Sequence record: NC_048045.1
Length of the DNA stretch: 64,000 nt
Direction: 5' to 3' (one strand)
The notes beneath the pieces were generated by a model, which was not told the DNA's origin, made no database searches, and worked only from the letters and a program-made list of their open reading frames with translations. Shown one piece after another: positions 37,474 to 60,725 of the stretch; position 1 is the stretch's first letter; every line of letters starts with the position of its first letter. The position numbers and the translations under genes are program-made.

Positions 37474-38146
37474 AGAGAAGCTCCGGTTTGGCGCTGACGG
37501 GCTTGGACCAGTCCCAGACGAACCACGCGTAAGCGAAGCGCGGCGCGCCCTTGGTCCCCTCGATCCAGCGGGGGCGATGGCGAAGAGTGACCTTCGCGGC
37601 GAAAGCAGGGTGATCGAAGAGGTCCGAGCGCGAGCGCGCGGCGTCCCATTCGTGGCGGCAGAGGAAGGCGACGAAGCCCTTGTCGGCTTCCATCAGCTTG
37701 AGGGCGTGGCGGGCGGCGCGCTCGGCGTCCTTGCCGTAGGGCGGGTTGGAGATGATGGCGTCCGGGCGCGCCGGCAGCGGAGTGACCTTGCGCTCCTTGC
37801 CCTCGTCATCGATCACCGTCTCGGGGCGGGCCTTCAGCGCGCCCAGGCGATCGAGATCGTCCGGGGTCAGCTTGAAGAAGTCCTCGACCGCGTCGACGTC
37901 GAAGCCCTCGTAGCGATGGATGTCTGTGGAAAGGACCTCCTGCACGTAGGGCCGCAGCGGGTTGGCAATCGCGCCGTTGCCGGCGAAGGGCTCCCAGGCG
38001 AAGAAGCCGGCGAACTCGTCGCCCATGGCCTCAATCAGCGCGTCGAACGCGGGACGAGGCGTCGGATAGAAATCCAAGGGGTTCCTGGCATAGCCCGAGG
38101 CGCCCAGCATGGAGGGGTCTTTGCGACCGGCATCGGAGAGAGACAT
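37463..38146 (-). CDS. Amino (N6A/N4C) DNA methyltransferase-like protein; start 38146 or 38164
   Basis: WEPFAGNG SAM-binding motif and IISNPPY catalytic motif. Confidence 0.75.
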   Translation of the reverse strand: MSLSDAGRKDPSMLGASGYARNPLDFYPTPRPAFDALIEAMGDEFAGFFAWEPFAGNGAIANPLRPYVQEVLSTDIHRYEGFDVDAVEDFFKLTPDDLDRLGALKARPETVIDDEGKERKVTPLPARPDAIISNPPYGKDAERAARHALKLMEADKGFVAFLCRHEWDAARSRSDLFDHPAFAAKVTLRHRPRWIEGTKGAPRFAYAWFVWDWSKPVSAKPELLYAG

Positions 38147-38154
38147 GGCCTGGA

Positions 38155-38194
38155 GGGATGTCATGGTTAACGAAGGGTGTCAAGATTCACGACA
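38155..38194 (-). promoter_or_regulatory. Motif promoter (divergent from the RNA island)
   Basis: TGTCGTGAATCTTGACA-N17-CATCCC on minus; TTAACCAT in the spacer. Confidence 0.6.
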
Positions 38195-38223
38195 TTGACT
38201 GTCGTGACGCACCACGCTAGATA
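38195..38223 (+). promoter_or_regulatory. Sigma70-type promoter of the large ncRNA
   Basis: TTGACT-N17-TAGATA; GCTAGATA resembles the Caulobacter housekeeping -10. Confidence 0.65.
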
Positions 38224-38855
38224 CCCTCGACGAGGCGGTCTCCTGCTCCTAGCGCGTGCCCTCCAGCCTTTCCGAAGGCAATGCGCCGGATCGCTGAGCG
38301 TGGGAATCCAGAGCGAGGCAGCGCTCTGCTCCCCAAAGAGTGGGCCAAGCGGTGCGGGCGGAAAGGCTCAGGGTCCGTGGCTCCATCCAATGCGCAGGAG
38401 AGGCCGTGCTCCTTCTGACGCAGCGGGCGCCCGACGTTGCGGGTTGTGAGGCGGGACTGGCCGAGATGATCAACGGTCCGGGGCGGGAGGGGCTTGACCT
38501 CTCCCGCGTCCGCCTCTAGCGTAGCCAGACATTTAGGCGCAGCACTGCCCTAAGGATGCGGGTCAAGTTCGGGCCGGTCTAGGGCTTGGAAGTCTACCCT
38601 TGGAGCAGGACTGCCTCTGCGACTTGGACGGCCTGGGCGACGCACCCGACCCATGAGGCGAACGCCGGCCAAGACATGGCACTAGGCGTGACGGGGACCA
38701 GAGGTCCCGCCCATTCGCCGCGCCGGCGGCAGCAAAGCTCATTGAGCGGATGGTGGCACGGGCGCGAGCCCGATTTTGAGAGCCAGCGGAGAGCCACCTT
38801 CCTCCCTGGCCCGGCGACGACGAAAGCTGGGTGGCTGTAACCGCTCGTCTGAGGG
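38224..38855 (+). ncRNA. Large (about 630 nt) multidomain structured ncRNA, family unassigned
   Basis: 5'/3' ends complementary (38224-38239 with 38840-38855); 38241-38249 pairs with 38602-38610; many local hairpins; promoter before, terminator after, no credible ORF. Confidence 0.7.
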
Positions 38856-38881
38856 ATGCGTCCCCAAGATCATCAAGACGC

Positions 38882-38912
38882 AAAAGGCCCCGATCTCGCG
38901 ATCGGGGCCTTT
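38882..38912. terminator. Bidirectional intrinsic terminator
   Basis: AAAAGGCCCCGATC-TCGC-GATCGGGGCCTTT (GCGA loop on minus) between convergent RNAs. Confidence 0.8.
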
Positions 38913-38919
38913 CAAAATC

Positions 38920-39008
38920 TGGAGCTACGGGAGGGACTCGAACCCTCATAGGTGTCGCCACCAGCAGAGCTTTGCAGGCCCGCGCCTAACCTCTCGGACC
39001 ACCGTAGC
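38920..39008 (-). tRNA. tRNA-Cys(GCA) with long variable arm
   Basis: GCTACGG/CCGTAGC acceptor, CTGCAAA anticodon loop, GAGGG-TTCGAGT-CCCTC T-arm, U73 plus encoded CCA; 89 nt. Confidence 0.85.
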
Positions 39009-39009
39009 A

Positions 39010-39190
39010 AAATCAGGACTGGCGCCCGAAGGCCCAGCCCCGATCCCGACGATCCAAGGGAGGGCCATAGCTGTCCCAAGGAGCACCGTGACGGCGTGGC
39101 AGGCGACTGAAGCCGTCAAGTCGAAGGGCTTCCGGCGCCGGTCACCCTAACCTCCGGGCTCTTTCGAGCGCGAGTGAGGTCCTCCTACGC
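39010..39190 (-). ncRNA. Structured leader or ncRNA upstream of tRNA-Cys
   Basis: GCTC-GAAA-GAGC and GCC-TTCG-GGC tetraloop hairpins downstream of promoter 39196-39224. Confidence 0.4.
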
Positions 39191-39195
39191 CGATC

Positions 39196-39224
39196 CTTAT
39201 AGCGGAGCCTTCACGTGTCCGCAA
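39196..39224 (-). promoter_or_regulatory. Promoter for the minus-strand RNA unit
   Basis: TTGCGG-N17-TATAAG (GCTATAAG). Confidence 0.5.
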
Positions 39225-39256
39225 CGAAAAATGTGTCGTGAGCGACGACTTTTCTC

Positions 39257-39286
39257 TTGACAGTCCCGATTGGGCTCTGGTAGAGA
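39257..39286 (+). promoter_or_regulatory. Promoter for the tmRNA/tRNA unit
   Basis: TTGACA followed after 17-18 nt by GTAGAGA; start near 39290. Confidence 0.55.
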
Positions 39287-39289
39287 ACA

Positions 39290-39665
39290 GGCATCGTTGT
39301 AATTCGGACAACGGAAACGGCGGCAAGACAGGGGTGCGATTCCCCTCGCCTCCACCATGAGCCCCTGGCGCTGGGAGTACGCGACTCCTGGGCGGGGAGC
39401 GTTACCCCGACGGGATGCGTCCCGAGCAAAGGTGTAGCCAGGGTCTCATGATGGGGGCGATCAGTTTCGATTGGCGCATGTGACTGGAAGACGCAACGGT
39501 GGGTGACCTCCAGGCCAGCTTGCTGGTGATCGGGTCAGTGCAACAGAAATGTCGCATCGAACGACAACGACGTCGTGGCTTACGCCTCGGCTCGTGAAGC
39601 CATCGCCGCCTAATAAGCGGTAGAGGCGTGTCCCGGCGGACGCGCGTGTCACAAAAAGGCCCTGC
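39290..39665 (+). ncRNA. ssrA: tmRNA, circularly permuted two-piece type (acceptor piece to 39357; intervening segment 39358-39452; coding piece from 39453)
   Basis: T-arm AGGGG-TGCGATT-CCCCT plus CGCCTCCACCA precedes GGGGGCG (G3-U70 pair). Resume codon GCA at 39554; tag ASNDNDVVAYASAREAIAA then TAA TAA. Outer ends approximate. Confidence 0.88.
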
Positions 39666-39824
39666 ATCTACGGACCGGGGCCAGTCCGCCTCCCACCTTT
39701 CGCAGGTGGGATCGTCATCATCGCGTGTCTGTCGGAAACTTCACGTAACCATTGACGATCCCATCTCCGTAAGGTGGTCCCATTCTGGAGCGTGGTGTGA
39801 TATCCACGGGGACCACCACACAAA

Positions 39825-39903
39825 CGCGGGGTAGAGGAGTCCGGTTGTCCTCGTCTGGCTCATAACCAGGAGATCGGGGGTTCAAATCCCCCTCCCGCTC
39901 CCA
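39825..39903 (+). tRNA. tRNA-Met(CAT), initiator-like
   Basis: CGCGGGG 5' end with unpaired C1, CTCATAA loop, GGGGG-TTCAAAT-CCCCC, CCA. Confidence 0.85.
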
Positions 39904-40146
39904 ATGCGAACGCCGGCTATTGAGAACGAAGGCGTGACAGGCTCGGAGAGAACGAGCACTGCAATCCGGGCTATGAGGCCGTGATGTAGCGGACGTCGGC
40001 GAGATCAGACGTGACACCTGGAGAGACGGGACCAGTTTTCCAGGCCGCATGCTCGGCGCGCCGCGATCCGCCCTAGGGTCAAGCGTCAGGGGATGAGGCT
40101 AGTCTCCGGCTTCCGAGCTAGGGCATGCGGCTTGGAAAGCTGGTTT
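39904..40146 (+). ncRNA. Structured inter-tRNA RNA(s)
   Basis: 23-bp continuous stem 40031-40053/40122-40144; modules shared with the large ncRNA. Confidence 0.5.
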
Positions 40147-40233
40147 GGTACGGTGGCTCGACAGGTAAGGCATCGGCCTCATAAGCCGAGGGACTAGCTC
40201 CCGATCCTGGTTCAAATCCAGGTCGTACCTCCA
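40147..40233 (+). tRNA. tRNA with CAT anticodon (Met/Ile2) and long variable arm
   Basis: GGTACGG/TCGTACC acceptor, TCGGC-CTCATAA-GCCGA, V-arm GGGA-CTAGC-TCCC, CCTGG-TTCAAAT-CCAGG, U73-CCA; 87 nt. Confidence 0.82.
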
Positions 40234-40240
40234 AAAATCA

Positions 40241-40272
40241 GACGGCCGCCGGGGCGATCCGGCGGCCGTTTT
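40241..40272 (+). terminator. Intrinsic terminator, GCGA loop
   Basis: GACGGCCGCCGGG-GCGA-TCCGGCGGCCGTTTT. Confidence 0.75.
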
Positions 40273-40274
40273 GC

Positions 40275-40314
40275 TGTCGTGAATCTTGACACTCCGGGTT
40301 GAGCTAGGCATTAT
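40275..40314 (+). promoter_or_regulatory. Motif promoter of the cadherin-repeat gene
   Basis: TGTCGTGAATCTTGACA-N17-CATTAT. Confidence 0.7.
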
Positions 40315-40342
40315 GCCGCTTGACTTTCAGGAGATTTGTGTC

Positions 40343-43033
40343 GTGGCTCGATCCACTCGTTCCGTCGCGTTGGCGCGCGTCGTCACGCCCGCGCAACTGA
40401 AGCGCGATATCCGTATTCGTCGCGCGGACGAACTGGCTGGGCCGAGCGGCCCCAATGGCGTGGTCCTGATCGGGATCACCAACGACCGCGTCATGGAAAA
40501 CAGCGCGCCGGGCACGCCCGTGGGCGACATCTACACGATCCCGGCCGGCGCCGACATCGAACTCGTCACCACCGGCGGCAATCGCTTCGATCTCGTCGGC
40601 TCGACCCTGGTGGTGGGCACGACGCCCCTCGACCACGAGGCCACGCCCGTCGTCAACGTCCTGGTGCATGCCGAGTACGCGGGATCGACCCTGGAAACCA
40701 ACCTGCCGATCACCATCCTCAACGAGACCGAGGTGATCGGCGTCACGCTGTCGGCCAACACCGTCCTGGAAAACTCGGCGGCCGGCGTGACGATCGGGAC
40801 CTTGACCCCCAACCCGGCGGACGCGACGCTCCAGGTCGTCGGCCCCTACGCCGGCTATTTCACGGTCGCGGCCGGCAACATCCTGAAGACCGGGGCGACG
40901 CCGACCGACTACGAGACCGCACCCAACCTGACCGATCACTCCTACCCGGTGACGATCGCCGCCACCCGCCAGGGCGAGACGGCCAATTTCACCATCCCGG
41001 TCTTCGTCCTCAACCAAGTCGAGATCACCAACATCACCCTCTCGGCCAATCACATCGCCGAGGGCTCGGGTAGCGGCACGGTGGTGGGCGGCCTGACTTC
41101 CACGCCGTCGGGCGCGACCTTCTCGCTGGTCGACAACGCCGGCTCGCGCTTCGCCCTGGCCGGCAACAACGTCGTCGCCGGCAGCGTCGCCACCAACTAC
41201 GACACCGCTACCCAGCACGACATCACCGTGCGCGGCACGATCGGCAACGAGAGCCTCAACAAGACCTTTACGATCCTGGTCGACAACGTCAACTCGATCA
41301 GCGACATCACCTTGACGGGCGCGTCGGTCAACGAGAACACTGCCGCTGGCGTTACCGTCGGGACCTTCGCCACTGTCCCGCCCGGCCTGCCGCTGACCCT
41401 GTCCGACACGGCTGGAAACCGCTTCGCCCTGGTTGGAAACACGCTCCAGACGGGCGCGGTCGCGACCAACTACGAGGTCGCCCAGACCCACCAGATCACG
41501 GCCCAGGCGACGTTCGGCAGCGACACCCTGTCGAAGAACTTCACGATCACCGTGGTCGACGTCGACGAGATCAGCGACATCACGCTCTCGGCCAACACGG
41601 TGACCGAGAATACGGCCGCCGGCGTCACCGTCGGCGCCCTGACCTCGACGCCGTCGGGCGCGACCTTCTCGATCGTTTCCCAGACGCCGGCTGGAACCTA
41701 TTTCGCTGTCAACGGGACTAACCTCCAGACGGGGGCGACGCCGACCAACTACGAGGCCAATACCAGCCATTCGGTCACGATCCGGGGCACGCGTCAGAGC
41801 GAGACCTTCGACAAGACGTTCACGATCAACGTGTCCGACGTCGACGAGATCAACAACATCACCCTGTCGGCCACGTCCTTGAACGAGAACTCGCCGCAGG
41901 GCACCACCGTTGGTACACTGACGGCCGCGCCGATTGACACCGGGGTGACCTACTCGATCGTCTCCCAGACGCCGGCTGGCAACTATCTCCAGATCAGCAG
42001 CAACACCCTCCAGGCCGGATCGACCGCGACCAACTACGAGGCCAACACCAGCCACTCGGTCACGATCCGGGGCACGCGCCTGAGCGAGACCTTCGACAAG
42101 ACGTTCACGATCACCATCAACGATCTGGTCGAACTGAGCACCATCAGCCTGTCGGGCTCGTCGATCGACGAGAACTCGGGACCGGGCACGGGGGTGGGCA
42201 CGCTCTCGTCGTCGCCGGCCGGCGCGAGCTTCAGTCTGACGGACAACGCCGGCGGGCGGTTCGCCTTGACCGGTGGCGTGAACATCGTCGCAGGCTCCGT
42301 GGGCACGGATTATGAGGCCGCCCAGTCGCACCAAATCACCGTCCAAGGTACGCGCCTGGGCGAGACCAAGAGCCAGAGCTTCACCATCACCGTCAACGAC
42401 GTGAACGAAGCTCCGCCGGCGCCTGATCTGGACAGCTTCAGCCTGTCGGGCAACTCGCTACAAGAGAACTCGGCGCCGGGCACGCCAATCGGGACCTTCT
42501 CGTCTTCGCCGTCGGGGGCGAGCTATACGCTGACCGACAGCGCGGGCGGCCGGGTATCGCTGGCGGGCGCCAACCTCTCGGCGGGCTCGACCAACACCGA
42601 CTACGAGACCACGCCTTCGTTCTCGATCGGCGTCACCGCGACGCGCGGCGCGACCTCGATCCCGCAGAACTTCACGATCAACGTGGGCGACGTCTCGGAA
42701 GGCGGCGGCGGCGGAAGCCAGACCCTTTCCGTCTCGAAAAACGCCGGTAATCTGACCGGCTCGGCCGTTGGGGGTACGACCCCGCCCACTACCACCCAGA
42801 CCATCACCGCGACTGCCTCGGGCGGTACCGCTCCGTATAGCTATCAATGGGAATATGTGAGTGGCGATACGGGTTGCCTGCTCGCCAACGTTTCTGACCG
42901 TGAAGCCTACTGGTACCTCGCCAATGGTGATCGGCCGTCCAACCGCACGGCGATCTGGCGGTGTAAGGCCACCGACGCGATCGGGAACTACGGCTACACG
43001 TCGAACTCCCAGATCACGCTTACCTGGAGCTAA
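40343..43033 (+). CDS. Cadherin/Ig-like repeat protein (8 repeats), probable virion appendage
   Basis: AGGAG SD then GTG 40343; eight roughly 95-aa repeats ITLSxxxxxENxxxGxxVGxL...(N/D)YE...FTIxVxDV. Confidence 0.8.
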   Translation: MARSTRSVALARVVTPAQLKRDIRIRRADELAGPSGPNGVVLIGITNDRVMENSAPGTPVGDIYTIPAGADIELVTTGGNRFDLVGSTLVVGTTPLDHEATPVVNVLVHAEYAGSTLETNLPITILNETEVIGVTLSANTVLENSAAGVTIGTLTPNPADATLQVVGPYAGYFTVAAGNILKTGATPTDYETAPNLTDHSYPVTIAATRQGETANFTIPVFVLNQVEITNITLSANHIAEGSGSGTVVGGLTSTPSGATFSLVDNAGSRFALAGNNVVAGSVATNYDTATQHDITVRGTIGNESLNKTFTILVDNVNSISDITLTGASVNENTAAGVTVGTFATVPPGLPLTLSDTAGNRFALVGNTLQTGAVATNYEVAQTHQITAQATFGSDTLSKNFTITVVDVDEISDITLSANTVTENTAAGVTVGALTSTPSGATFSIVSQTPAGTYFAVNGTNLQTGATPTNYEANTSHSVTIRGTRQSETFDKTFTINVSDVDEINNITLSATSLNENSPQGTTVGTLTAAPIDTGVTYSIVSQTPAGNYLQISSNTLQAGSTATNYEANTSHSVTIRGTRLSETFDKTFTITINDLVELSTISLSGSSIDENSGPGTGVGTLSSSPAGASFSLTDNAGGRFALTGGVNIVAGSVGTDYEAAQSHQITVQGTRLGETKSQSFTITVNDVNEAPPAPDLDSFSLSGNSLQENSAPGTPIGTFSSSPSGASYTLTDSAGGRVSLAGANLSAGSTNTDYETTPSFSIGVTATRGATSIPQNFTINVGDVSEGGGGGSQTLSVSKNAGNLTGSAVGGTTPPTTTQTITATASGGTAPYSYQWEYVSGDTGCLLANVSDREAYWYLANGDRPSNRTAIWRCKATDAIGNYGYTSNSQITLTWS

Positions 43034-46852: not shown

Positions 46853-47421
46853 GCGGCTTCCTTGATTTCCCGAGCGCGCTCGGTCCAGATCATCAGGTCG
46901 TAGTCGGCCGGGCTCATCCCGGCGGCGTCGGCAAGGCCCAGGAAGGCCTCCTCCAGGCGGCGATAGACCTTCGGGTTGCCCGGCGTCACCTTGGGCGCTT
47001 CCACCCCGTTCTGGGCCAGATGCGCGAGGATGTGGGTGTCCAGGGCCGACAGGCGTTGGTCGGCGCGCGAGTGCAGCAGGAAGAACCGGGCGGTCTTGGG
47101 GCCAACCCCGTGGATGGCCTCGAACTTCTCGACCGGGTCGTGACGCAGGTCCAGGCCCCAGGCGCTCTGGGCGAAGCAGGCTTCCAGCCGGGCGTATTGG
47201 CCGATGCCGAACATCTCCATGTAGGCGCGCAGCTTGTTCTCGAAGATCGCGCAGCGCAGCTTGTCGAACGGCGTGGTCCCGACCATGGCGTGGAGCATCT
47301 GGTCGAGCTTGCGGGCCTGGATGTCGGCGGTCTTGCCCGCGACGATGCAGCAGAACAGCCACCACTCTTCCAGTTCCGCGTCGGTGCGGTCGAACTTGGT
47401 CACGTCACGCGGGTCGATCAT
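46849..47421 (-). CDS. HhH-GPD DNA glycosylase (OGG/EndoIII-like)
   Basis: IHGVGPKTARFFLL helix-hairpin-helix with Lys, followed by ALDTHIL (catalytic Asp). Confidence 0.75.
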   Translation of the reverse strand: MIDPRDVTKFDRTDAELEEWWLFCCIVAGKTADIQARKLDQMLHAMVGTTPFDKLRCAIFENKLRAYMEMFGIGQYARLEACFAQSAWGLDLRHDPVEKFEAIHGVGPKTARFFLLHSRADQRLSALDTHILAHLAQNGVEAPKVTPGNPKVYRRLEEAFLGLADAAGMSPADYDLMIWTERAREIKEAA

Positions 47422-59838: not shown

Positions 59839-60255
59839 ATGCCGCAACGCCAAAAAGACGACCAAGCCCAAGCCGCCAAGCCCCCTGGGGTTAAGGGAGG
59901 CTCGCAGCCTGGAAGTCCTCAAGGCGAGGCCACCCAGGGCGCGGTGCTTCTGAGCCCCGAGGCGATCGGTCAGATCGGCGAGGCGCTCGGTGGTCGGACC
60001 CACTGGCAGGCCTCGATCGCGCGCCGCGTCGGCGTCTCCAAGTCGCAGATCACCCGCTACCTCAACGGGGATCGCACGCCCAACACCGCGCTGGGCGACA
60101 GCTATCTCGAACTGATGGTCGACAACATCGAGGAGCTTTCGGAGCTTCTGGCGACGCCGGGCTTGCCCCAGGCCGATAGTCCTGAGGTCAGCGAGGCCCG
60201 CCGCCACATCGAGCAAGCCGTGCGCCTCCTGCGCGAAAAAGTTCTCTACATCTGA
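59839..60255 (+). CDS. XRE-type HTH protein
   Basis: WQASIARRVGVSKSQITRYLNGDRTP. Confidence 0.7.
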   Translation: MPQRQKDDQAQAAKPPGVKGGSQPGSPQGEATQGAVLLSPEAIGQIGEALGGRTHWQASIARRVGVSKSQITRYLNGDRTPNTALGDSYLELMVDNIEELSELLATPGLPQADSPEVSEARRHIEQAVRLLREKVLYI

Positions 60256-60263
60256 AGGACCCC

Positions 60264-60725
60264 ATGACCACCCTGATCGAACAACTCCGCAACGACGCCC
60301 TGGCCGCGCGCAAGGCCGCCGTCAAGAAGGAAGCCGGCGGCGAGCACGCCGCGCTCCTGGCCTCGGTCGCGTCCGACGCCACCATGATCGGCAAGAACGA
60401 CCGGGCCGCGCCCGGCCGCGAGCCGACCGATGACGAAACCGCCAAGGTCGTGAAGAAGTACATCGCCGGCCTGGAGACCTCGATCGAGGCGGCCCGCAGC
60501 GAGGAGGAGCGTTCGCGCTTCATCGTCGAGAAGCGGCGCCTGGAGGGCTTCCTGCCGCAGATGCTCGATGGCGGTCATCTGACCGATGCGATCCACGTCA
60601 CCCTGGCCAAGCTGGGCGTCGAGCGCGACGTCAAGAGCACCAAGGCGGTGGTCGCCGATCTGCAAGAGACCTATCCCGGTCAGATTGACCCGGCGGCCGT
60701 CTCGCGCTACCTTCGCAACGTCTGA
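60264..60725 (+). CDS. YqeY/GatB-domain protein
   Basis: EQLRNDALAARK...PTDDE...VKKY...E...LEGFLPQML...G.ID pattern of YqeY. Confidence 0.7.
   Translation: MTTLIEQLRNDALAARKAAVKKEAGGEHAALLASVASDATMIGKNDRAAPGREPTDDETAKVVKKYIAGLETSIEAARSEEERSRFIVEKRRLEGFLPQMLDGGHLTDAIHVTLAKLGVERDVKSTKAVVADLQETYPGQIDPAAVSRYLRNV

Follow-up and report, generated by a model that had tools for sequence, protein, structure and literature searches.

What fills a stretch of about 2.1 kb for which a phage genome record lists three tRNAs and no protein? The stretch spans positions 38165-40285 of a 64-kb window (the whole stretch of DNA that was analysed) from the 221-kb genome (220,934 bp) of Caulobacter phage CcrBL10 (MH588544.1, genus Poindextervirus; BL10 below), window positions being record positions minus 62000. 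It lies between a methylase gene (- strand, ending at 38164) and the gene of a cadherin-like protein (+ strand, starting near 40286), and the three tRNAs are the only record features between them. A previous sequence-only reading had described some 2 kb of it as a protein-free RNA island, laid out as three promoter-to-terminator units encoding a large non-coding RNA (ncRNA), a tRNA-Cys preceded by a structured RNA, and a transfer-messenger RNA (tmRNA) with two CAT tRNAs and structured spacers. Our best explanation, to which we give a joint probability of roughly 60% as a whole, is that the stretch is a conserved stable-RNA gene island of phiCbK-like phages (Dolichocephalovirinae). The identities of its genes, its non-coding nature, conserved structure and strand preference, its synteny and a repeated RNA motif are established in the following sections.

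The island is conserved and lacks coding signal

Synteny across phiCbK-like phages, a comparison that the sequence-only reading had proposed, is maintained: the island is kept in relatives infecting both Caulobacter and Brevundimonas. Its protein-free character is likewise confirmed, as no coding sequence (CDS) is annotated there in the BL10 record, codon periodicity is absent and indels shift the frame. Between BL10 and phage Rogue, the 51 substitutions in 38232-38880 are distributed 21/16/14 by codon phase and are accompanied by six indels of 1, 3, 1, 1, 2 and 1 nt, showing neither the codon-phase bias nor the frame-preserving indels of a coding gene of the CbK_gp128 kind. The adjoining methylase gene, compared between the same two phages, shows a distribution of 3/5/26 and no indels, and the A1-like gene shows 77/43/128 with indels solely of 3 nt. 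The longest open frame of the region varies in frame and length between phages.

The layout of three promoter-to-terminator units also holds, by sequence and by conservation in relatives (Table 1). The predicted promoters follow the sigma-73 pattern of Caulobacter, and relatives share them. The -35 box of the first of them, P1, falls within alignment columns 4-43, which are invariant in nine phages, as are about 30 nt upstream of P1, and the TTGAC of the tmRNA promoter is invariant in nine phages of four genera, Brevundimonas phages among them. A second promoter-like site inside the first unit (38494-38522) conserves TTGAC and the TA of its -10 element in nine phages, and its -35 box doubles as the loop of a covarying hairpin. 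Both terminators consist of a G+C-rich hairpin with U-runs, as intrinsic terminators do, the + strand U-runs being short (UUUCAAAA at T1 and UUUUGCUGU at T2). T1, which is invariant in relatives and annotated as a terminator in phage Karma, is common to the ncRNA unit on the + strand and the tRNA-Cys unit on the - strand.

We infer how many transcripts arise and where they end, how these are processed, that the tRNAs are charged and that the phage gains from the island. Host RNA polymerase with its housekeeping sigma factor would transcribe the three units, and RNase P and other host enzymes would cut the transcripts into mature RNAs. Unit 1 would yield a structured + strand ncRNA, most likely of two or three modules; unit 2 would yield a tRNA-Cys with a long variable arm; and unit 3 would yield the tmRNA in two pieces together with two tRNA(CAU) species, one initiator-like and the other with a long variable arm.

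A two-piece tmRNA is encoded beside three unusual tRNAs

The presence of a tmRNA is borne out by Rfam, in which the model tmRNA_permuted (RF04321) scores 82.2 bits over 39295-39613 (gathering score 47; E = 3e-14). The gene, which is without annotation in the CcrBL10 record, encodes a circularly permuted, two-piece tmRNA with the acceptor piece upstream of the coding piece. GGGGGCG (39453-39459) pairs with CGCCUCC (39346-39352) to form a tRNA-Ala-like acceptor stem with G3-U70, complemented by a T arm and by a 3' ACCA that ends at 39357. The tag frame (39554-39610) reads ASNDNDVVAYASAREAIAA (full reading VASNDNDVVAYASAREAIAA) and ends in a degron-like tail followed by two stops (39611-39616), and related tags are found in relatives. 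The 3' limit of the coding piece was taken from homology to an Aragorn tmRNA call in phiCbK.

Homologues in eight relatives score 58-88 bits with RF04321, and the gene was found in every relative examined; among their records, only that of Brevundimonas phage Bajun annotates a tmRNA feature, and in phage BL64 a probably spurious CDS (BL64_127c) overlaps the tmRNA region. The 2012 genome paper of phiCbK reported that Rfam found no functional RNA besides tRNAs (PMC3556154). A search of the whole BL10 genome did not find SmpB, and since the phage is without SmpB of its own, the host protein is the presumed partner with which the phage tmRNA would work. Because the tag keeps a host-like ANDN start and xAA end, tagged proteins would be expected to go to host proteases. 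In Caulobacter, the host's own tmRNA is under cell-cycle control.

The tRNA-Cys and the two CAT tRNAs (CAU in the RNA) are supported by both Aragorn and Rfam. The genome holds 25 tRNA genes, 22 of which form one cluster 50 kb away from the three in the island. The first tRNA(CAU) partially resembles a bacterial initiator tRNA. Its 1:72 pair is weak (C1xU72 in BL10; CxU, CxA or U-A, never G-C, across eight phages), and its D stem, GAGG/CCUC, provides A11:U24 in the Caulobacter phages, with C11:G24 in Gurke. The three G:C anticodon-stem pairs and A73 of initiators are not found, since 29:41 is U-A, leaving two G:C pairs, and position 73 is C. The tRNA-Cys and the second tRNA(CAU) are paralogues (acceptor stems GCUACGG and GGUACGG), each with a variable arm of 3-4 bp that carries a GNRA loop in most homologues. 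The long variable arm of the tRNA-Cys (4 bp with a GCGA loop) covaries across eight phages and is always GNRA-capped; that of the tRNA(CAU), which has a 5-nt loop, CUAGC, in BL10, covaries across Caulobacter and Brevundimonas phages.

The structured RNA envisaged upstream of the tRNA-Cys was not substantiated, as the leader of about 180 nt (39009-39188) folds at z = -1.29 only, which is not significant; its first ~100 nt or so are almost identical in BL10 and Rogue, and the segment 39078-39292 has no counterpart in phiCbK, where the large RNA GOLLD sits instead. The structured spacers of the tmRNA unit are upheld in the list of parts (Table 1). The leader of the second tRNA(CAU) includes a hairpin whose loop, AUGAGGCUAGU, is conserved (core 40085-40102). 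This module serves as tRNA(CAU) leader in the Caulobacter phages and is found within the tmRNA intervening segment in Bajun, Gurke and a relative from IMG/VR (core at L007:2810-2827, L009:4626-4643 and L079:6114-6131), and in both settings the core lies upstream of a predicted RNase P site.

A two-hairpin RNA motif recurs at module ends

A motif of about 55 nt recurs in the island, formed by an ACGCC...GGCGUGAC hairpin (hairpin 1) and a covarying hairpin with an AGA/GAGAGA loop (hairpin 2). The pattern ACGYCGGC-N-RGRCGTGAC has three copies in the 220,934-bp genome, all of them on the + strand and in the island, against none for the reversed control. A covariance model (CM), R1, built from 31 motif copies, separates these three (Table 1) from the remainder of the window, where scores do not exceed 13 bits. 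Hairpin 1 (ACGCC/GGCGU, with 5' GA and 3' GAC flanks) is near-invariant, apart from rare compensated C-G to U-A changes, and the distance between its halves varies from about 9 to 30 nt, in keeping with a hairpin rather than with a dimeric site on DNA. Hairpin 2 covaries, with 56 doubly changed cells compared with 27 in shuffles; none of 500 shuffles reaches 56, and slid controls are far lower.

In phiCbK-like phages the motif is placed directly after the initiator-like tRNA and twice between the two CAU tRNAs; in Colossus and IMG/VR relatives it lies 5-8 nt before tRNA-Cys, and in Colossus and Gurke it is followed by TTGACA promoters. The motif marks module ends across the Dolichocephalovirinae. 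It is also present beyond the phiCbK-like phages, in unrelated IMG/VR contigs, in Myxococcales and Planctomycetaceae metagenome-assembled genomes (MAGs) and in about 46 metagenome contigs. In the unrelated contigs it lies 5-40 nt downstream of genes, such as those of a major head protein and a RecT-like protein, and once before a T9 run. The MAG copies (L112:7451-7609 and L145:5874-5942 on the - strand, L124:3299-3367 on the + strand) bear the labels Myxococcales (two tandem copies), Planctomycetaceae and 'bacterium'; these contigs are presumably prophages, or phage contigs binned with genomes.

The motif has no match in Rfam 15 and, with about 100 instances across loci L018-L250, is a candidate for a new RNA family. 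Because elsewhere it lies right after genes, sometimes with a U-run or promoter next, or abuts a tRNA 5' end, we infer a role for it in RNA processing, in RNA stability or in forming 3' ends. A broader proposal, which we put forward tentatively, is that the motif (GCGA-ACGCC-loop-GGCGU-GAC followed by the covarying stem with the AGA/GAGAGA loop) represents an undescribed, widespread class of phage RNA 'punctuation' that sets or protects 3' ends after highly used genes, and that phiCbK-like phages have multiplied it into a stable-RNA array around the tmRNA and tRNAs. The G-A/G-A flanks suggest a kink-turn-like fold of hairpin 1 that might be read by a specific factor, and the two unusual tRNAs might, through their GNRA-capped variable arms, dock onto other RNAs of the island. 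Hammerhead and other ribozyme readings of this motif and of the AUGAGGCUAGU module were dropped, as their core sequences proved unfit by eye and Rfam gave no match.

Unit 1 encodes a conserved structured RNA on the + strand

For unit 1 (38229-38912), RNAalifold on nine homologues yields 165 pairs, 37 of them with compensatory changes. Measured against shuffled alignment columns in six non-redundant phages, the comparative fold has z = -8.8 on the + strand and z = -5.9 on the - strand. Every sub-region favours the + strand, in agreement with the promoter, the G-U pairs (as in the CGAGGCAGCG hairpin) and the orientation of the motif. Folding of the single sequence against shuffles gives modest values (z = -3.1 on the + and -3.4 on the - strand) that are not decisive. 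The comparative signal reaches z = -5.7 over alignment columns 315-500, which comprise the P2 hairpin and the body of module 2 upstream of the motif, and z = -4.6 for the block that opens shortly before motif copy 1, takes in the motif and extends through module 3. Rfam searches at E up to 10 returned only the tmRNA and the tRNAs for 38100-40350, and likewise for the island of Gurke.

The large ncRNA of the sequence-only reading is retained in part: a structured and conserved + strand region of about 680 nt stands, and two or three RNA units are likelier than a single large one. The internal TTGACC-17-TAGCGT site, the motif at 38650-38716 and T1 together suggest that unit 1 is made up of three modules (~285, ~180 and ~200 nt). 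The terminal hairpin pair of module 1 (38449-38514) resembles a degenerate copy of the motif, with a GGCCGAGA loop and then a loop CUUGAC, and nhmmer located the 5' box of module 2 in an IMG/VR relative, just upstream of tRNA-Cys. Colossus carries three units of ~230 nt, each ended by the motif and two of them then followed by TTGAC promoters, and the island of an IMG/VR relative contains eight motif copies detected by the CM.

Several observations weigh against this account of the island. The first part of unit 1 is weak (comparative z = -2.05 for 38229-38514), its structure draws on about 4-5 independent lineages, and no conservation of unit 1 beyond the motif can be recognised in Colossus or in the Brevundimonas phages: nhmmer profiles of the three module bodies gave no convincing homologue in Colossus, Bajun or Gurke, and in a wider alignment of module 2 the regions outside the motif did not align. 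The motif copies of BL10 are without a U-run and hence are not classical terminators here, and the near-invariance of hairpin 1 would also suit a protein-binding site. Four wastewater 'RNA' runs contain island pieces of 150-270 nt at depth 2-20, flagged as probably DNA, and a coding control stretch is present at similar shares in the same study, with no sign of specific island expression.

Near-identical pieces of CcrBL10, of 150-270 nt, occur in wastewater RNA-type libraries of 2024-2025, from which it follows that a BL10-like phage circulates in wastewater. A strand-specific RNA sequencing time course of phiCbK infection exists (PMC10688885), the corresponding stretch of phiCbK being JX100813 101100-104400.

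Table 1. Features of the CcrBL10 stable-RNA island, in window coordinates. Modules 1-3 are the predicted parts of unit 1; roles of promoters, terminators and leaders are predicted.
Feature	Position	Strand	Basis or remark
Left island border: promoter element GTGAATCTTGACA of the methylase gene, facing outward	38178-38190	-	13-mer count in genome
Promoter P1, TTGACT-17-TAGATA ((GC)TAGATA; TTGACT-17-GCTAGATA)	38194-38222	+	Sequence; invariant in 9 phages
ncRNA module 1: covarying hairpins, invariant loop CGAGGCAGCG (38314-38323)	38229-38514	+	RNAalifold compensatory pairs, invariant blocks
Second promoter-like site, TTGACC-17-TAGCGT	38494-38522	+	Conservation in 9 phages
ncRNA module 2: conserved box AGGCGCAGCAC (38535-38545), then motif copy 1	38530-38716	+	CM R1, 71.7 bits
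Motif copy 1: hairpin 1 (38662-38689), GAC, hairpin 2 (38694-38708)	38650-38716	+	CM R1, 71.7 bits
ncRNA module 3: GNRA-loop hairpins, invariant boxes GAGAGCCA and CCAAGAT	38717-38882	+	Alignment, RNAalifold
Bidirectional intrinsic terminator T1	38884-38911	both	12-bp G+C stem, U-runs on both strands
tRNA-Cys(GCA), 89 nt, 7/5 acceptor/T arms, U73, encoded CCA	38920-39008	-	Aragorn; Rfam tRNA, 35.2 bits
Leader RNA of the tRNA-Cys unit	39009-39188	-	Hairpin and UUUU (39045-39009) right before the tRNA
tRNA-Cys unit promoter, TTGCGG-17-(GC)TATAAG	39224-39196	-	Kept in Rogue
tmRNA unit promoter, TTGACA-18-TAGAGA	39257-39286	+	TTGAC invariant
tmRNA acceptor piece with T arm and 3' acceptor strand CGCCUCC, followed by ACCA	39295-39357	+	RF04321 alignment
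tmRNA intervening segment, 95 nt, predicted to be removed in maturation	39358-39452	+	Insert in Rfam alignment
tmRNA coding piece, 5' GGGGGCG	39453-39704	+	Rfam alignment; 3' limit by homology
Initiator-like tRNA(CAU), 79 nt	39825-39903	+	Aragorn; Rfam, 47.7 bits
Motif copy 2, beginning 3 nt past the CCA of the initiator-like tRNA	39898-39962	+	CM R1, 51.0 bits
Motif copy 3, hairpin-1 stem ACGUC/GACGU (compensated C-G to U-A variant)	39981-40039	+	CM R1, 43.7 bits
Leader module before the second tRNA(CAU)	40040-40146	+	Outer stem CCGCAUGC/GCAUGCGG; hairpin with conserved loop AUGAGGCUAGU
tRNA(CAU) with long variable arm, 87 nt, U73, encoded CCA	40147-40233	+	Aragorn; Rfam, 47.1 bits
Bidirectional intrinsic terminator T2	40242-40269	both	11-bp stem, 10 G-C pairs
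Right island border: promoter of the cadherin-like protein gene (GTGAATCTTGACA class), facing outward	40279-40314 (13-mer 40279-40291)	+	

Supply, defence and other readings of the island

With the parts listed above, the island would supply an initiator tRNA, a Met or Ile tRNA, a Cys tRNA and ribosome rescue independently of host pools. The sequence-only reading went further and proposed an anti-defence toolkit of replacement tRNAs, ribosome rescue and decoy or scaffold RNA. In such a toolkit, the tRNAs would resist anticodon nucleases or PIN-domain toxins, and the tmRNA would free ribosomes stalled by defences that cut mRNA or tRNA. VapC toxins of other bacteria do cut initiator tRNA and tRNA-Cys, the three island tRNAs stand apart from the main cluster of 22, and two of them have, subfamily-wide, an atypical long variable arm that could alter nuclease recognition. 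Furthermore, phage tRNAs have been shown in other systems to evade tRNA-targeting defences (PMC10264068, PMC11555353). An anti-defence toolkit fits the parts list and is a reasonable hypothesis, nothing more; we consider it somewhat unlikely. No link from the island to any defence system was found and no Caulobacter nuclease that targets its tRNAs was identified, the decoy or scaffold role is pure conjecture, and the same parts can be explained by simple tRNA supply or by freedom from host regulation. Host-independent supply of initiator tRNA, Met, Cys and ribosome rescue is an equally simple account. The tRNA-binding YqeY-like gene that had been cited as a companion lies 20 kb away, and its open reading frame (ORF; 60264-60725, + strand) stays below threshold, at 24.8 bits against a Pfam cut-off of 27. 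This ORF matches Pfam YqeY over nearly its full length, and a gene for a helix-turn-helix protein (59839-60255) lies just upstream of it.

GOLLD (RF02032) is present in the islands of phiCbK, Karma, Magneto and BL57, at 165-171 bits against a threshold of 150. It lies there on the - strand between the tmRNA promoter and tRNA-Cys, with a tRNA-Gly or tRNA-Lys embedded in it (L002:3113-3599 on the - strand, and the equivalent place in L003, L005 and L006), unannotated and unreported in the 2012 genome paper. The phiCbK GOLLD promoter, TTGACG-15-GCTAGAAC as read by eye after reverse-complementing the alignment row, occupies the same place as the BL10 tRNA-Cys promoter. No GOLLD match was obtained in BL10, either in 38100-40350 (E up to 10) or in the whole genome, and Rogue is also without it; at the GOLLD position, both phages carry the unrelated tRNA-Cys leader described above.

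These data bear on the idea that unit 1 is itself one large ornate RNA of the GOLLD/ROOL type that forms a higher-order particle and stands in for GOLLD 300 nt away. Unit 1 adjoins phage tRNA genes, where GOLLD and ROOL are typically found (10.1101/2024.12.08.627333; PMC5737381), its overall comparative z of -8.8 and its many hairpins with conserved loops would suit such an RNA, and GOLLD itself occupies the same island in the Shapiroviruses. We nevertheless regard this idea as improbable. Since phiCbK has both GOLLD and a unit 1 homologue, the two are different RNAs and one does not replace the other; unit 1 has no Rfam match even at E = 10; its internal promoter-like site is conserved and the motif recurs as a module end; and Colossus and an IMG/VR relative carry three to seven short units instead.

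In the Brevundimonas jumbo phage Kikimora, a Ro60-like gene (Pfam TROVE, 1e-12, and vWA) lies directly upstream of the island (L010:1131-2501, + strand), and Gurke has an ORF of the same size at the same place (L009:1130-2500) that is annotated as hypothetical only. Some island RNAs there might be Y-RNA-like partners. The Y-RNA/Ro60 reading that this gene prompted was rejected for BL10, as no TROVE domain was found genome-wide and neither BL10 nor Gurke gave a Y-RNA match.

The island is bordered by outward-facing copies of the 13-mer GTGAATCTTGACA, which occurs 13 times in the 221-kb genome and looks like a phage-specific promoter class. The two border copies, at record positions 100190 (-) and 102279 (+), bracket the island as an 18-nt inverted repeat, and a further one, at record position 46938, stands shortly before the main tRNA cluster. 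That the island acts as DNA, whether as an origin of replication, a hub of regulation or a hot spot of recombination, with the ACGCC...GGCGTGAC repeats as protein-binding sites, seems more improbable still. The location in the replication module between divergent promoters, a change of GC skew sign near 40000, the near-invariant sequence of hairpin 1 and the inversion of the tRNA-Cys segment between phage genera would be compatible with it. However, a half-site spacing that varies from about 9 to 30 nt speaks for a hairpin rather than for a dimer site, hairpin 2 covaries freely, all motif copies share one orientation with G-U pairs favouring the + strand, and the skew change tracks gene orientation, phiCbK being without a strand switch here.

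Finally, that 38229-38880 codes for a - strand protein, as annotated in several relatives (CbK_gp128, CcrRogue_gp125, and a 'DNA transfer protein' in BL64 and RBC8), is hardly credible: stop-free stretches of 100-200 codons do exist, as expected at 65% G+C, but codon periodicity is lacking both in the comparison with Rogue and in the - strand gp128 ORF of phiCbK (4/11/8 against Karma, 14/16/13 against Magneto, with 1-nt indels), close relatives differ by frame-shifting indels, the longest open frame is inconsistent among phages, and the records of BL10, RBC63 and RBC57 annotate no CDS over 38229-38880. The relatives' ORFs here, including the 'DNA transfer protein' of BL64 and RBC8, are probably artefacts of the 65% G+C content. 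Hypothetical or 'DNA transfer protein' CDS features cover the ncRNA region at L002:2130-2702, L004:2372-2785, L005:2150-2662, L016:872-1285 and L016:1612-1953.

Significance and comparison with known systems

New here are the two-hairpin motif, which is absent from Rfam, and the presence of GOLLD in the phiCbK-type island, which CcrBL10 lacks. The phiCbK-like phages are standard tools of Caulobacter biology, and their island concentrates in one locus a phage tmRNA, an initiator-like tRNA, two tRNAs with long variable arms, GOLLD in one genus and further conserved structured RNA that has been annotated in several records as hypothetical proteins. The locus is a genetically tractable system in which to ask what phage tmRNAs and ornate phage RNAs do and how GOLLD relates to neighbouring tRNAs. 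The two-hairpin motif, in turn, is a candidate RNA family with dozens of metagenomic members and a testable role in RNA-end formation.

The tRNA cluster of phage T4, which is processed by host enzymes, includes two small stable RNAs, species 1 and 2. Like the island, the T4 cluster is a phage transcription unit that mixes tRNAs with other stable RNAs, although the phage family and the RNAs are different; to our knowledge, T4 has neither a tmRNA nor a repeated end motif.

With the two-piece tmRNA of Caulobacter and other alphaproteobacteria (RF04321 / RF01849), the phage tmRNA shares the permuted order, a tRNA-like domain with G3-U70, the encoded CCA and an intervening segment. It differs in being phage-encoded without a phage SmpB and in its predicted co-transcription with two tRNAs, and in some relatives the intervening segment holds a conserved extra module. 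The tag of the host, AANDNFAEEFAVAA (PMC1233412), begins with ANDN and ends in xAA as the phage tag does; it has 13 coded residues (the published 14 include the tmRNA-borne Ala) and ends in VAA, whereas the phage tag has 19 coded residues and ends in IAA.

U73 and the GCA anticodon are the main CysRS identity elements, and a natural tRNA-Cys with a long variable arm is known as selC* (PMC5389517). The phage tRNA-Cys has the long variable arm, U73 and GCA anticodon of the selC* type. In contrast to the 8/4 arms of selC*, its arms are 7/5, with a 7-bp acceptor stem (GCUACGG/CCGUAGC) and a 5-bp T stem (GAGGG/CCCUC); its variable arm is short (3-4 bp) and GNRA-capped, a paralogue with a CAU anticodon lies beside it, and the gene is phage-borne.

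Like the GOLLD/ROOL tRNA islands, the locus encodes structured phage RNA beside, or co-transcribed with, tRNA genes, and relatives carry GOLLD itself in the island. In contrast to them, unit 1 of CcrBL10 matches no Rfam family and seems to be assembled from modules, with promoter-like sites inside it and an end motif that is repeated.

Lastly, the two-hairpin motif is comparable to the DUF3800-I, drum and skipping-rope motifs (PMC5737381), which are also short, combine conserved sequence with covarying stems, lie downstream of genes and sometimes end in a terminator. It differs from these in sequence and fold, and in that it is repeated within a stable-RNA island, where it abuts tRNA 5' ends.

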